From Octopus sinensis (lineage: Eukaryota), in assembly GCF_006345805.1 (NCBI RefSeq), contig NC_043007.1, positions 26,164,001-26,228,000 on the forward strand: a stretch of DNA of 64,000 nucleotides. Reading direction: 5' to 3'. Numbering within the stretch: the first letter of the stretch is position 1; every line of letters begins with the position of its first letter. Shown here piece by piece: positions 666 through 35,195 of this stretch. The translations under genes were made by a program, and so were the position numbers. The notes beneath the pieces are model-generated. The model was not told where the DNA came from and did no database searches. It saw nothing but the letters and a program-made list of their open reading frames with translations.

Positions 666-775
666 AAACGGTAAACCTGACTTACTGCGCATGCTTGTAT
701 CGGCACATGTCATGATAGACGACAGGAATAACCCCAGACAGCAAACTGCTTTGCACTTAGCTGTACAAAACCCAA
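666..775 (+). CDS. ANK-PARP exon 1 of window (NGKPDLLRMLVSAHVMIDDRNNPRQQTALHLAVQNP)
   Basis: ttttctcag acceptor, gtaag donor, ankyrin TALHLA motif. Confidence 0.9.
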
Positions 776-34500: not shown

Positions 34501-35195
34501 AGTCATTTGACTGCGGCCATGATGGAGCACCGCCTTTAGTCGAGCAAATTGACCCCAGGACTTATTCTTTGTAAGCCTAGTACTTATTCTATTGGTCTCT
34601 TTTACTGAACCACTAAGTTACGGGGGCATAAACACACCAACATTGGTTGTCAAGCGATGTTGGGGAGACAAACACAGACACACAAACATATACACACACA
34701 TGCATGTATATATACGACAGGCTTCTTTCAGTTTTCGTTTACCAAATCCACTCACAAGGCTTTGGTCGGCTCGGGGCTATAGTAGAAGACACTTGCCCAA
34801 GGTGCCACGCAGTGGGACTGAACCCAGAACCATGTGGTTCGTAAGCAAGCTACTTACCACACAGCCACTCCTGCGCCTATATATTAATTATACTTGAATA
34901 TCTGAAGTGGATGGGCGCCTGCCCCTATCGCAGTGCAATGAATTCAATCACCAAAAGAACACAAATAGGCAGGTGAGAAGAAAAATACCTGTAAGAACGA
35001 CAGCATAATAATTTGAAAAGTTTCGATTTGAGTAAAGACGTGTTTTTTTCTCTTTCTGTTGCAGGTGCTACCTTACCTCTTGGACCACTGATTAACAACC
35101 CAACAGCTAAGTCGAGGTATGTGGCATACAATGAATACATTGTGTACGACCCAGCACAGGTGTGTCAAAGGTATCTGGTGCAATTCTCCAGTTAA
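666..35195 (+). CDS. Multi-exon gene (5'-partial, 23 exons in window): ankyrin-repeat / WGR / PARP regulatory / PARP catalytic protein (tankyrase-like by annotation convention, PARP1-type core)
   Basis: Manually spliced 23 exons, all GT-AG with matching intron phases, total 3970 nt = 1 nt + 1323 codons including TAA at 35193-35195. Motifs: >=10 ankyrin TPLH-like motifs, FTRWGRIG (WGR), MPFG and LSNEYFHLIP (regulatory domain), LLWHGS, GIYTAD, YNEYIVY (catalytic). Confidence 0.95.
1128..1378 (+). mobile_element. CR1/L2-clade LINE 3' fragment
   Basis: Translates FSVRVADPWNKLPDEIVKMPTTTWFKVSLDQKWPELFA*, followed by a (TTAAC)-like tail; second copy near 19700. Confidence 0.75.
1497..1731 (+). CDS. 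ANK-PARP exon 2 (..GAKVNAVDCDGLTPLHCSV..NADVFAKDKKNRLSLHYAF..)
   Basis: ttttaacag acceptor, gtaatt donor, two ankyrin motifs, phase 1/2. Confidence 0.92.
2542..2950. mobile_element. MITE with 30-bp TIRs (GGATC..) and 8-bp TSD
   Basis: ggatcttttcggtttgaacggcagtttttt / aaaaaactgtcgttcaaaccaaaaagatcc; GAAATTTG at 2534-2541 and 2951-2958. Confidence 0.85.
3190..3346 (+). CDS. ANK-PARP exon 3 (..IDLTDFFGQTPLHRAACRGATICCRHLVK)
   Basis: ttttcacag acceptor, gtacta donor, ankyrin motif. Confidence 0.92.
3834..5344 (+). mobile_element. Non-autonomous Helitron with degraded PIF1-helicase fragment
   Basis: A|TC 5' end, cccgagcaacgccggg hairpin then CTAG|T 3' end; 4740-5225 reads NMRAH..LLALGEG..AILAPRN..YPIEVLNS..GLPPH..PIMLIRNL..CNGTRL with frameshifts. 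Confidence 0.88.
6389..6465 (+). CDS. ANK-PARP exon 4 (LHADINRKDNSGNTPLAYAVRHHHD)
   Basis: ttttccag acceptor, gttcgt donor, ankyrin motif. Confidence 0.9.
6685..6870. repeat. Imperfect (TA)n microsatellite
   Basis: Direct reading. Confidence 0.95.
7485..7659 (+). CDS. ANK-PARP exon 5 (CALILLQMGANVKDNV..WKWQPIR..SIFQ)
   Basis: ccttctag acceptor, gtatgt donor, completes the ankyrin repeat from exon 4, phase 2/0. Confidence 0.88.
8799..8879 (+). CDS. ANK-PARP exon 6 (EAIGSELQNVAYMMLESTAMDLKSGIE)
   Basis: long pyrimidine tract + cag, gtaag donor, 81 nt phase 0/0, open frame. Confidence 0.82.
8966..9266 (-). mobile_element. tRNA-derived SINE family D (tail type 2)
   Basis: Head gtggaggcgcaatggc..ggtttcaattccc; similar copy 14581-14873. 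Confidence 0.8.
10149..10307 (+). CDS. ANK-PARP exon 7 (AALNVSKYNVALRLIKK..DGRNLFHILA..QLK)
   Basis: tactttag acceptor, gtaatt donor, degenerate ankyrin motif. Confidence 0.88.
10450..10868 (-). mobile_element. tRNA-derived SINE family B (~400 bp, internal (CA)n(TA)n)
   Basis: Head gcaggagtggctgtgtggtaag..ggttcagtccc, core cttgggcaagtgtcttct; other copies near 11560, 22720, 27480, 29040, 32700, 34480, 40070, 45820-46890, 50665-51285, 52620, 55990-56700, 63715. Confidence 0.85.
10899..11189. mobile_element. Fold-back MITE (long inverted arms), possibly MULE-like
   Basis: ~80-bp inverted arms 10967-11042 / 11116-11190; flanking direct repeat ccaaacaaaag(aa); second copy at 25276. Confidence 0.6.
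11822..11942 (+). CDS. ANK-PARP exon 8 (IAEMMHEKRVSLNDIDMYGCTPLMYAALL..)
   Basis: tttttgcag acceptor, gtaagt donor, ankyrin motif. Confidence 0.9.
11955..12388. mobile_element. piggyBac-like (TTAA) MITE family 2, interrupted by a family 1 MITE at 12151-12373
   Basis: Degenerate CCCTTTAGCATT start, ends ATGCTAAAGGG|TTAA; similar copies at 25765-25940 (partial) and 41335-41548. Confidence 0.7.
12151..12373. mobile_element. piggyBac-like (TTAA) MITE family 1, nested copy
   Basis: TTAA|CCCTTTCGATAC..GTAATGAAAGGG|CTAA. Confidence 0.8.
13668..13776 (+). CDS. ANK-PARP exon 9 (KNSQLDIKHKDRYGRDVMAAFFWNYD..)
   Basis: ttattag acceptor, gtatgt donor, phase 1/2 matches neighbours. Confidence 0.87.
15062..15329 (+). 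CDS. ANK-PARP exon 10 (..ITPLIFAI..LLKNGASPNFADEKGLTPIMHAVKK)
   Basis: cttctag acceptor, gtaggc donor, two ankyrin motifs. Confidence 0.92.
16495..16910. repeat. CT-rich tandem repeat, ~134-bp unit, about 3 copies
   Basis: cacattctaatc recurs near 16501, 16635, 16769 with colinear downstream sequence. Confidence 0.85.
16917..17107. mobile_element. piggyBac-like MITE family 1
   Basis: TTAA|CCCTTTCGTTAC..GTAATGAAAGGG|TTAA. Confidence 0.85.
17198..17780 (+). CDS. ANK-PARP exon 11 (NDINIVKLLLNYD.. plus long D/E-rich tract)
   Basis: cgtttag acceptor, g|gtaagg donor; 583 nt gives the phase 1 required by exon 12. Confidence 0.88.
18918..19186 (+). CDS. ANK-PARP exon 12 (..LNYTDNDGRTVLHHLV..AGLSPLKHTL..DKW)
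   Basis: gtttcag acceptor, gtaagc donor, ankyrin motifs. Confidence 0.92.
19306..19535 (+). mobile_element. tRNA-derived SINE family A with 20-bp TSD
   Basis: A box ggcgagctggcaga, B box gagttcaaattcc; atat(c/t)tgttgtggcagattt on both flanks. Other copies near 8130-8390, 14235, 20503, 21575, 23040, 33840-34430, 41590-42020, 54125, 55340. Confidence 0.85.
19700..19950 (+). mobile_element. CR1/L2-clade LINE 3' fragment (second copy)
   Basis: Highly similar to 1128-1378, same WNKLP C-terminus and tail. Confidence 0.75.
20910..21088 (+). CDS. ANK-PARP exon 13 (linker, EKPTFTCLGE..NFEEDSQSM..KASG)
   Basis: cttttaaag acceptor, gtaagt donor, phase 0/2. Confidence 0.87.
21349..21570. mobile_element. 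piggyBac-like MITE family 1
   Basis: TTAA|CCCTTTTGTTAC..GTAACGAAAGGG|TTAA. Confidence 0.85.
21895..22000 (+). CDS. ANK-PARP exon 14 (WGR N-part, YDILLTKVDV..MYNFYKMQ)
   Basis: attgcag acceptor, gtaagt donor, NxFYxMQ WGR motif. Confidence 0.93.
23267..23436 (+). CDS. ANK-PARP exon 15 (WGR core, YILFTRWGRIGDRGQ..FKSKTGNDW)
   Basis: ttgtag acceptor, gtaagt donor, WGR and KTGNxW signatures. Confidence 0.95.
23571..23715 (+). CDS. ANK-PARP exon 16 (FKNHPKKYRLVE..SKLPPRLQELIKEL)
   Basis: cattttag acceptor, gtaagg donor; PKKY and SKLP motifs as in PARP1-type WGR/regulatory junction. Confidence 0.92.
24227..24348 (+). CDS. ANK-PARP exon 17 (regulatory domain, ..VDAEIMPFGQIKK..)
   Basis: cctttcag acceptor, gtttgt donor, MP(L/F)G motif. 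Confidence 0.9.
25276..25526. mobile_element. Fold-back MITE, same family as 10899-11189
   Basis: Same interior and arms; flanks (att)gacaaagat / (att)gtcaaagat. Confidence 0.6.
25661..25736 (+). CDS. ANK-PARP exon 18 (ELIEMIDKSKPSTGPNEEYQKNCEK)
   Basis: tttccatcag acceptor, gtaagt donor, phase 2/0. Confidence 0.87.
25985..26636 (+). mobile_element. Retroposon family C, long copy ((GAT)n tail, internal gcacgtaaaaagcacc subrepeats)
   Basis: 3' end aacccatgctagcatggaaagcggacgttaaacgatgatga; variably 5'-truncated copies near 1966, 3445, 6870, 8421, 13075, 15425, 18170, 21800, 24530, 29960, 33000, 43243, 56095. Confidence 0.8.
27180..27357 (+). CDS. ANK-PARP exon 19 (IAKLSNEYFHLIP..MVENLLDYELASRIL..)
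   Basis: ttcttacag acceptor, gtatat donor, LSNxYxxLIP regulatory-domain motif. Confidence 0.93.
27922..28437 (-). mobile_element. Non-autonomous Helitron with helicase C-terminal remnant
   Basis: Minus strand A|TCTCTCTATATATAAA start, cccgggcaacgccggg hairpin + CTAG|T end; QCFAHSQLYVGCSRVG..NIVYTEVFE*. Confidence 0.88.
29652..29759 (+). CDS. ANK-PARP exon 20 (INPLDYIYKAVGCHIKLM..QYILKYIYST)
   Basis: gttttccag acceptor, gtgagt donor, NPLDxxY start of catalytic domain. Confidence 0.93.
31294..31487 (+). CDS. ANK-PARP exon 21 (..[38 protein letters not shown])
   Basis: gtttcag acceptor, gtacgt donor, catalytic His codon 31392-31394 and PARP1-like D-loop. Confidence 0.96.
32044..32260 (+). CDS. 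ANK-PARP exon 22 (GIYTADTFTKAKGYC..LLCEVALGKM..)
   Basis: aaaccag acceptor, gtaagt donor, catalytic Tyr codon 32050-32052, LLCEVALG motif. Confidence 0.96.
34480..34878 (-). mobile_element. SINE family B, full length
   Basis: Complete head, core, microsatellite and tail. Confidence 0.85.
35065..35195 (+). CDS. ANK-PARP last exon (GATLPLGPL..YVAYNEYIVYDPAQVCQRYLVQFSS*)
   Basis: gttgcag acceptor, catalytic Glu codon 35133-35135, stop TAA. Confidence 0.96.

Follow-up and report, generated by a model that had tools for sequence, protein, structure and literature searches.

The question that this locus raises is what kind of enzyme is encoded when a long array of ankyrin repeats stands before a poly(ADP-ribose) polymerase (PARP) domain, as in the gene read from positions 666-35195 (+) of a 64,000-nucleotide stretch of Octopus sinensis DNA (NC_043007.1, 26,164,001 to 26,228,000; hereafter the window, numbered from its first letter): a tankyrase, an ankyrin gene lying next to a PARP gene, or a PARP1-type enzyme equipped with ankyrin repeats. 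We consider the last answer highly probable, namely, that the gene is an ankyrin-type member of the PARP1 clade ('Clade 1-ank', PME-5/Adprt3-like) in which, we infer, a WGR domain would act as the break-dependent switch and the ankyrin repeats would do the targeting. The gene adds a further member to an already described, little-studied PARP subfamily.

Domain architecture of the encoded protein

When the spliced product of 1322 amino acids (aa) was run against Pfam, ankyrin families were matched at aa 1-515 and 700-780 (Ank_2, E = 5.7e-42), a WGR domain at aa 854-934 (4.9e-20), the regulatory domain (PARP_reg) at aa 968-1115 over its whole model length (1.7e-23), and the PARP catalytic domain (PF00644) at aa 1131-1321 (3.3e-43); the same order—ankyrin, WGR, regulatory, catalytic—is followed by the motifs in the stop-free segments of the + strand between 0.6 and 35.2 kb. 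The initial annotation, which had read these four parts in this order with a His-Tyr-Glu (H-Y-E) triad and no SAM domain, was thus borne out, and its catalytic codons for H (31392), Y (32050), and E (35133) fall exactly in the rebuilt frame. No SAM family was found by Pfam in the spliced product even at E<=5, nor any SAM-like match in the window with five tankyrases as tblastn queries, which queries matched ankyrin exons only. SAM was likewise missing from the Pfam list (ANK, WGR, PARP_reg, and PARP) of P0121, a protein of 1123 aa that was returned by a database search in which the first two-thirds of the model, counted from the N-terminus, served as the query, and that is encoded by L001, an intronless Logan contig of 5070 base pairs (bp) from a relative (run SRR27666067). 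Zinc fingers, PADR1, and BRCT gave no Pfam match within the 1322 aa encoded in the window.

By inspection and alignment, approximately 13 ankyrin repeats were recognized in the window, followed by an Asp/Glu-rich linker—located in exon 11 and parting the main array from a final ankyrin pair—then by that pair, a 70-aa linker, and the WGR, with more than 850 aa standing before the latter. The description of this region as a tankyrase-like N-terminus did not hold: the best solved matches of the array were DARPins (designed ankyrin proteins) and ankyrin-1/2; tankyrases gave local matches only, at approximately 50 bits, and were ranked amid generic, often bacterial, ankyrin proteins in the database search that returned P0121. 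In contrast, the array was colinear, insertions included, with proteins from a copepod, a horseshoe crab, a sea star, and a nematode, with which it had odd features in common: a 'DPIELV' repeat, a basic W-x-W loop after 'LLQxGAN', and a long loop that precedes the final two repeats. Because of that colinearity with orthologues from other phyla and those common oddities, we regard the array as family-specific and not tankyrase-like. A basic insertion within the array, 'EADKKRKPIWKWQPIRNMAKRPQKHEH' at 7540-7620 (exon 5), is kept in the relative and partly across phyla; judged by its KKRKP motif, this insertion may serve as a nuclear localisation signal.

Between the window protein and the relative's L001 the identity was 90% in the ankyrin pair, 80% in the catalytic domain, 78% in the WGR, 68% in the regulatory domain, and 45% in the acidic linker, the pair, encoded by exon 12, thus being better conserved than any other part of the protein. 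The pair was matched by tblastn in most, but not all, of the relatives tested. The proteins of Plakobranchus and Pristionchus have acidic linkers at the equivalent position; for the copepod, Limulus, and Acanthaster, the sequences used either lack the linker or do not cover it.

Placement within the PARP family

With the segment from the WGR to the C-terminus as the query, the PDB sequences returned PARP1 at 221 bits, PARP2 at 185, PARP3 at 110, and PARP4 at approximately 40, and no tankyrase chain at E<=1e-3; the catalytic domains of the five tankyrases reached approximately 33 bits against the window, with approximately 30% identity over about 100 aa (tblastn). An AlphaFold2 model of aa 692-1322, obtained with 31 relatives in the alignment (mean predicted local distance difference test, pLDDT, 83; predicted template-modelling score, pTM, 0.75), had as its best Foldseek matches the WGR-catalytic parts of PARP1 and PARP2 on DNA breaks (E = 1e-35 to 1e-33), and PARP1 catalytic-fragment chains, which comprise the regulatory and the catalytic domains, matched the model with template-modelling (TM) scores of 0.85-0.88. 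Sequence and predicted fold therefore agree with the PARP1-3-type core proposed in the initial annotation.

We built neighbour-joining trees on 466 columns of the WGR, the helical regulatory domain, and the ADP-ribosyltransferase domain, with 300 bootstraps counted as unrooted splits and with PARP3, the Caenorhabditis elegans PME-5, and the Dictyostelium discoideum Adprt3 absent from the set. The split that unites PARP1 and PARP2, including plant PARP2 and the chytrid BRCT-PARPs, had 100% bootstrap and excludes the window protein, which belongs instead to an animal group at 98% together with proteins from Plakobranchus, Patella, Helobdella, Rotaria, Medioppia, Tigriopus, two echinoderms, Pristionchus, and Gnathostoma, several of which carry ankyrin arrays. 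Inside that group, the window protein, its relative, and the Plakobranchus protein were joined at 78%. Protist ankyrin-type proteins fell between the animal group and the PARP1 plus PARP2 group. In a neighbour-joining tree that included tankyrases, these formed a distant outgroup on a long branch. The expected kinship with the nematode ANK-WGR-PARP proteins, as well as the expectation that the catalytic core would not group with tankyrases, were both supported by the trees; the array is also colinear with that of a nematode protein, and the identity with the Pristionchus protein is only 26%.

Within the WGR-helical-transferase core, the window protein has in common with human PARP1 and PARP2 the WGR Trp and Arg, a hydrophobic helical core, and the H-Y-E triad plus a Lys, along with a Tyr as in PARP2. 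Whereas PARP1 carries zinc fingers, BRCT, and PADR1, none of these is found in the retrieved part of the window protein; and in the place of the short basic N-terminus or SAP of PARP2 the window protein has the ankyrin array, the acidic linker, and the ankyrin pair.

Gene model and evidence for a single transcript

The gene model was rebuilt from the raw sequence by listing, for each pair of neighbouring coding blocks, every frame-preserving GT donor and AG acceptor; for nearly every pair a single strong, phase-compatible junction was prominent. In this manner, 23 exons between 666 and 35195 (+) splice into one open frame of 1322 codons, with all 22 introns being GT-AG and in compatible phases, and with a TAA stop codon at 35193-35195. 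The exon span of the initial annotation therefore stood as regards the joining of the exons into one frame, but not as regards the beginning of the gene: position 666 is an internal splice acceptor of phase 1, so that the start of the gene must lie upstream of the window, and the reading frame is still open at the 5' end of the model. The interval 666-35195 is accordingly the 3' four-fifths of a single protein-coding gene. A search of positions 1-665 revealed no upstream exon matching the extra N-terminal residues of the relative. As judged from the sequence, exons 1-23 are not a chance assembly, since they provide 1322 stop-free codons in 23 phase-matched exons, each with protein matches from other species. 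The exons are as follows.

Exon 1 (first in the window, internal), 666-775, +: second half of an ankyrin repeat and start of the next; AG at 664-665, GT donor; matches aa 283-318 of the upstream open reading frame (ORF) of L001
Exon 2, 1497-1731, +: ankyrin repeats, aa 37-115; best phase-compatible junction; 67% tblastn identity to L001, blastn block L001 959-1192
Exon 3, 3190-3346, +: aa 115-167, atypical repeat 'EPIELVQLLTS' and a canonical repeat; motif kept across phyla
Exon 4, 6389-6465, +: ankyrin repeat, aa 168-193; donor AG/GTTCGT, set by L001, which reads 'RHKHDSCAIMLLQ'
Exon 5, 7485-7659, +: aa 193-251, end of a repeat and basic insertion 'KKRKPIWKWQPIRN', resembling a nuclear localisation signal; insertion kept in relatives
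Exon 6, 8799-8879, +: 27 aa 'EAIGSELQNVAYMMLESTAMDLKSGIE', aa 252-278, recognized through a gap in the alignment to P0121; AG/GT sites, length a multiple of 3, blastn block L001 1606-1687
Exon 7, 10149-10307, +: ankyrin-like repeats, aa 279-331; junction choice and P0121 alignment
Exon 8, 11822-11942, +: ankyrin repeat, aa 332-372; junction choice and P0121 alignment
Exon 9, 13668-13776, +: ankyrin-like repeat, aa 372-408; blastn L001 1968-2052
Exon 10, 15062-15329, +: aa 408-497, long loop and two canonical ankyrin repeats; blastn L001 2078-2343, the block ending at the exon border
Exon 11, 17198-17780, +: 190 aa, last helix of the array, then the Asp/Glu-rich disordered linker (aa 516-691); L001 2345 runs straight on from 2343 (blastn), P0121 alignment
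Exon 12, 18918-19186, +: ankyrin pair adjoining the WGR, aa 692-781; matched by the relatives' proteins P0002, P0003, and P0004; helical, pLDDT 84-92
Exon 13, 20910-21088, +: linker between ankyrin pair and WGR, aa 782-841; junction choice and P0121 alignment
Exon 14, 21895-22000, +: initial WGR strands, aa 841-876; homologue matches, blastn
Exon 15, 23267-23436, +: WGR core, W892-G-R894 (23312-23320) and Q900; Pfam WGR and residue mapping
Exon 16, 23571-23715, +: end of the WGR (Y941) and linker to the regulatory domain, aa 933-981; residue mapping
Exon 17, 24227-24348, +: initial helices of the helical regulatory domain, aa 982-1022; weak donor AA/GTTTGT, P0121 colinear
Exon 18, 25661-25736, +: 25-aa mini-exon in the regulatory domain, aa 1022-1047; aligned to P0121, highest-scoring AG...GT candidate with the right phase
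Exon 19, 27180-27357, +: regulatory domain, aa 1048-1107; homologue matches, blastn
Exon 20, 29652-29759, +: end of the regulatory domain, aa 1107-1143; homologue matches, blastn
Exon 21, 31294-31487, +: catalytic domain, H1176 (31392-31394) in 'LLWHGS'
Exon 22, 32044-32260, +: catalytic domain, Y1210 (32050-32052) and K1217
Exon 23, 35065-35195, +: end of the catalytic domain, E1303 (35133-35135) in 'YNEYIVYD', stop codon

Two other junctions were discarded. With exon 17 joined straight to exon 19 the regulatory domain was too short, and the mini-exon at 25661-25736 was inserted; an alternative donor for exon 4, which would add 'RFVPFI', was ruled out by L001.

The joining of the ankyrin and the PARP exons was best illustrated by that contig, with which every exon of the model is colinear: P0121 matched aa 202-1299 (in the numbering of the initial model) in a single alignment at 67% identity, and an ORF located directly upstream in another frame matched aa 1-177 of the model and adds at least 283 ankyrin-rich residues upstream. 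A frameshift at about 1385-1440 of L001, either an assembly error or a real variant, splits the frame into these two overlapping ORF calls. In blastn the matching nucleotide blocks stop at the borders of the model exons and abut in the contig, which arrangement indicates that L001 is a spliced transcript whose exons are divided as in the model, and its colinearity with all the exons places the ankyrin and the PARP exons in one transcript in the relative. Together with the phase-matched junctions, the contig upholds the assignment of both sets of exons to one gene. Fused proteins containing ANK, WGR, the regulatory domain, and PARP were also found in Plakobranchus (1402 aa; 39% identical to the model over 1345 aligned columns), in Tigriopus, and in Pristionchus (E = 2.5e-88 over 1342 aligned columns), while in the partial Limulus protein P0124 the ankyrin array is joined to the start of the WGR. 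The 'short' relative P0002 only appears short because it is cut by the end of its contig, L003, the first 120 bases of which encode an ankyrin repeat upstream of the WGR core.

Acanthaster planci (L002; DF978492.1, 1-25394) has two annotated models on the same strand and 1.9 kb apart, the ANK-only P0126 and the 'PARP1-like' P0004. The tail of P0126 past its last repeat resembles intron read-through, and the two models taken together are colinear with the window protein, for which reason they probably represent, to judge by the sequences, one gene split by annotation.

Key residues and a possible activation mechanism

Residues were mapped through alignment to human PARP1 and PARP2 taken from PDB alignments, with the numbering calibrated on H862, Y896, E988, and W151.

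W892: PARP1 W589, PARP2 W151; kept
R894: PARP1 R591, PARP2 R153; kept
Q900: PARP2 Q159; kept
Y941: PARP2 Y201; kept
aa 868: PARP2 N127; Gly, DNA-contact position changed
aa 871: PARP2 K130; Asn, DNA-contact position changed
aa 919: PARP2 K179; Val, DNA-contact position changed

H1176, Y1210, K1217 (equivalent to PARP1 K903), and E1303 were conserved in all the sequences of the residue comparison, and the equivalents of the leucine-switch positions L698, L701, L765, and L768 in the helical domain of PARP1 are hydrophobic in the window protein. The Trp and the Arg of the WGR are needed for the DNA-dependent activation of PARP1, PARP2, and PARP3 (PMC4081085), and the Tyr of PARP2 contacts the 5' phosphate (PMC6294510); these three residues are kept in nearly all the aligned members of the family. 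With the WGR Trp, Arg, Gln, and Tyr kept, activation of the window protein by DNA breaks is plausible.

The mechanism that we propose would operate as follows. The helical domain would block the NAD+ site, as in PARP1, PARP2, and PARP3; the WGR, since the Trp, Arg, Gln, and Tyr of PARP2 are kept, would bind a nucleic-acid break, probably a 5'-phosphorylated one; and that binding would loosen the helical domain and so switch on the transfer of ADP-ribose, probably as polymer. The ankyrin array and the ankyrin pair would recruit partners or substrates or else place the enzyme on chromatin, thus replacing the zinc fingers and BRCT of PARP1.

At a more tentative level, and with considerable doubt, the ankyrin-type Clade 1 PARPs might be viewed as an ancient bilaterian orthologue group—one represented among molluscs, annelids, rotifers, arthropods, echinoderms, nematodes, and lancelets—of which a module consisting of the acidic linker, the ankyrin pair, and the WGR would be the defining trait and a part of the activation switch. 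The ankyrin pair could belong to such a switch because it is better conserved than the catalytic domain, and could, for instance, stand in for the zinc fingers of PARP1 by sensing chromatin or a partner, while the acidic linker could act as a built-in competitor of DNA.

Alternative readings of the locus

A long N-terminal array of ankyrin repeats followed by a C-terminal PARP domain with H-Y-E is also the layout of the tankyrases (PARP5a/b, Clade 4), and the C. elegans PME-5 is still named TANK-1 and termed a tankyrase orthologue in recent papers (PMC12978569), so that one might read the gene as a divergent tankyrase, with the RxxPDG-binding ankyrin clusters, five in number, of that family and a tankyrase-type catalytic domain. 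Domain content and phylogeny refute that reading, to which we assign next to no probability: the tankyrases possess SAM and have neither a WGR nor a regulatory domain (PMC2964712), while the window protein shows precisely the reverse; its catalytic domain finds the tankyrases only at the low bit scores given above, and no tankyrase chain among the PDB matches; the tankyrases stand far outside in the tree; and the ankyrin region has no preference for their repeats, the similarity being generic. Only slightly better is the standing of an arrangement of two neighbouring genes, exons 1-11 making up an ankyrin gene and exons 12-23 a short WGR-PARP gene, after the fashion of the adjoining Acanthaster annotations. 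Several database relatives are indeed short (450-750 aa), and an internal promoter may give rise to a short isoform; but the junction between exons 11 and 12 has good splice sites in matching phases, L001 runs unbroken from the array through the acidic linker and the WGR to the catalytic domain, fusion is seen in the proteins of Plakobranchus, Tigriopus, Limulus, and Pristionchus, the 'short' P0002 stops where its contig does with an ankyrin repeat upstream, and the two Acanthaster models, read-through tail included, fit a single gene, all of which makes a pair of genes very improbable. Unlikely, though less so than either of those two, is a real gene whose product works independently of nucleic acids, as a (mono-)ADP-ribosyltransferase that is constitutive or activated by protein; its WGR would then be only a structural remnant, and control would be exerted by the ankyrin modules or the acidic linker. 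This possibility draws on the three replaced DNA-contact residues, on the identity of the WGR-adjoining ankyrin pair, which exceeds that of the catalytic domain and hints at a family-specific regulatory contact, on the length of the acidic linker, which could compete with DNA, and on the fact that H-Y-E is no guarantee of polymerase activity; the conservation of the WGR Trp and Arg and of the Tyr for the 5' phosphate in nearly all the aligned family members, the completeness of the regulatory domain in Pfam, and the responsiveness of the worm and fly relatives to radiation argue against it.

We return, then, to the ankyrin-type PARP1-clade enzyme as the preferred reading, against which several considerations nevertheless weigh. 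The changes at aa 868, 871, and 919 affect positions of DNA contact; the activity, DNA binding, and partners of the mollusc members are predictions; and PARP3 has the H-Y-E triad yet makes mono-ADP-ribose, so that the triad alone is no proof of polymer synthesis. For the source species, the claim of one transcript derives from the relative and from splice logic, and the true N-terminus of the gene lies outside the window, so that further N-terminal domains are possible there. Finally, the trees were constructed by neighbour joining only, and the link to the C. elegans PME-5 runs via the Pristionchus and Gnathostoma proteins together with the literature, a search with the Pristionchus protein aimed at PME-5 having returned only Pristionchus proteins.

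Known relatives and their naming

Clade 1 PARPs with ankyrin repeats, a WGR, and the regulatory domain were defined as Clade 1A in 2010, in a survey that argued that these proteins are not tankyrases, that ankyrin repeats were gained independently in the two lineages, and that left PME-5 unplaced (Citarelli et al., PMC2964712); in 2014 the term 'ankyrin-type Clade 1 PARP' was applied to proteins from Dictyostelium, C. elegans (PME-5), Branchiostoma, and others (Perina et al., PMC4245714). The family is therefore known and little studied, as the initial annotation had stated, and the published surveys imply its absence from vertebrates and Drosophila. The Sciara member, PALP1, rose 68-fold after irradiation (2021 preprint, bioRxiv 10.1101/2021.10.28.466123), and pme-5, according to the work cited in PMC12978569—an article that still labels it a tankyrase orthologue—is induced by radiation, its knock-down raising the radiation-induced apoptosis of germ cells. 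We found no paper on a mollusc member. PME-5/TANK-1, Adprt3, and PALP1 ('Clade 1A' or 'Clade 1-ank') have the same order of ANK, WGR, regulatory, and catalytic domains, with H-Y-E and without SAM; the window protein differs from these in coming from another phylum, its nearest named relative being from a gastropod, and the protist ankyrin-type proteins lie outside the animal group in which it is contained.

The expectation that such genes would be mis-annotated as tankyrases in molluscs was not sustained, since none of the names on the relatives retrieved, which included no cephalopod annotation, is that of a tankyrase. The names encountered were 'poly [ADP-ribose] polymerase' (Plakobranchus), 'PARP 1' (Patella), 'PARP1-like', 'pme-5', and 'PP6 regulatory ankyrin repeat subunit B-like'. 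The last of these, in full 'serine/threonine-protein phosphatase 6 regulatory ankyrin repeat subunit B-like', is carried by Limulus P0124, which nonetheless reaches the WGR, and by Acanthaster P0126. Searches with the window protein brought up no annotated source-species protein nearly identical to it.

Remaining sequence of the window

The DNA of the window is AT-rich, of animal type, and contains many repeats. Two interspersed repeat families, with identities of 67-97%, occupy both strands throughout the introns and the 3' flank, and many spurious entries in the ORF list stem from them. Their copies, together with a tandem repeat and the microsatellites, include the following.

Repeat family 1, both strands, 17 copies, matches of approximately 100-220 bp: e.g., 1961-2143, 8400-8700, 15601-15786, 24536-24684, 30181-30403, 56314-56499
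Repeat family 2, both strands, 23 copies, matches of up to approximately 390 bp: e.g., 10480-10900, 22702-23024, 27488-27845, 34493-34875, 50895-51279, 63715-64000
Tandem repeat, 16485-16901: unit of 135 bp, 3.1 copies, 89% match, in the intron directly before the acidic exon 11
Microsatellites: 49927-50303, 56855-57416, 58123-58458, 59011-59436

The 35200-64000 interval, which consists mostly of repeat copies and microsatellites, contains no convincing second gene, and its ORFs at 40582-40935 (-) and 54202-54627 (-) had no Pfam match. Rfam and tRNA scans of the whole window found no Rfam family and no tRNA.

Significance

The present analysis provides a checked gene model for a mollusc member of a PARP subfamily of which functional study has so far been carried out only in C. 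elegans, and indicates that the whole architecture, the peculiarities of the ankyrin array included, is conserved across animal phyla. In public annotations the gene is often divided or wrongly named, one instance being a 'PARP1-like' protein beside a 'PP6 ankyrin subunit B-like' one. Current views of PARP evolution are unchanged by this finding. Should breaks indeed switch the enzyme on, we would have a naturally occurring DNA-damage PARP that relies on ankyrin repeats for its aiming, one that would inform us about how PARP cores are wired to different sensors; and if the switch composed of the linker, the ankyrin pair, and the WGR were true, it would constitute a new coupling of damage sensing to PARP activation.

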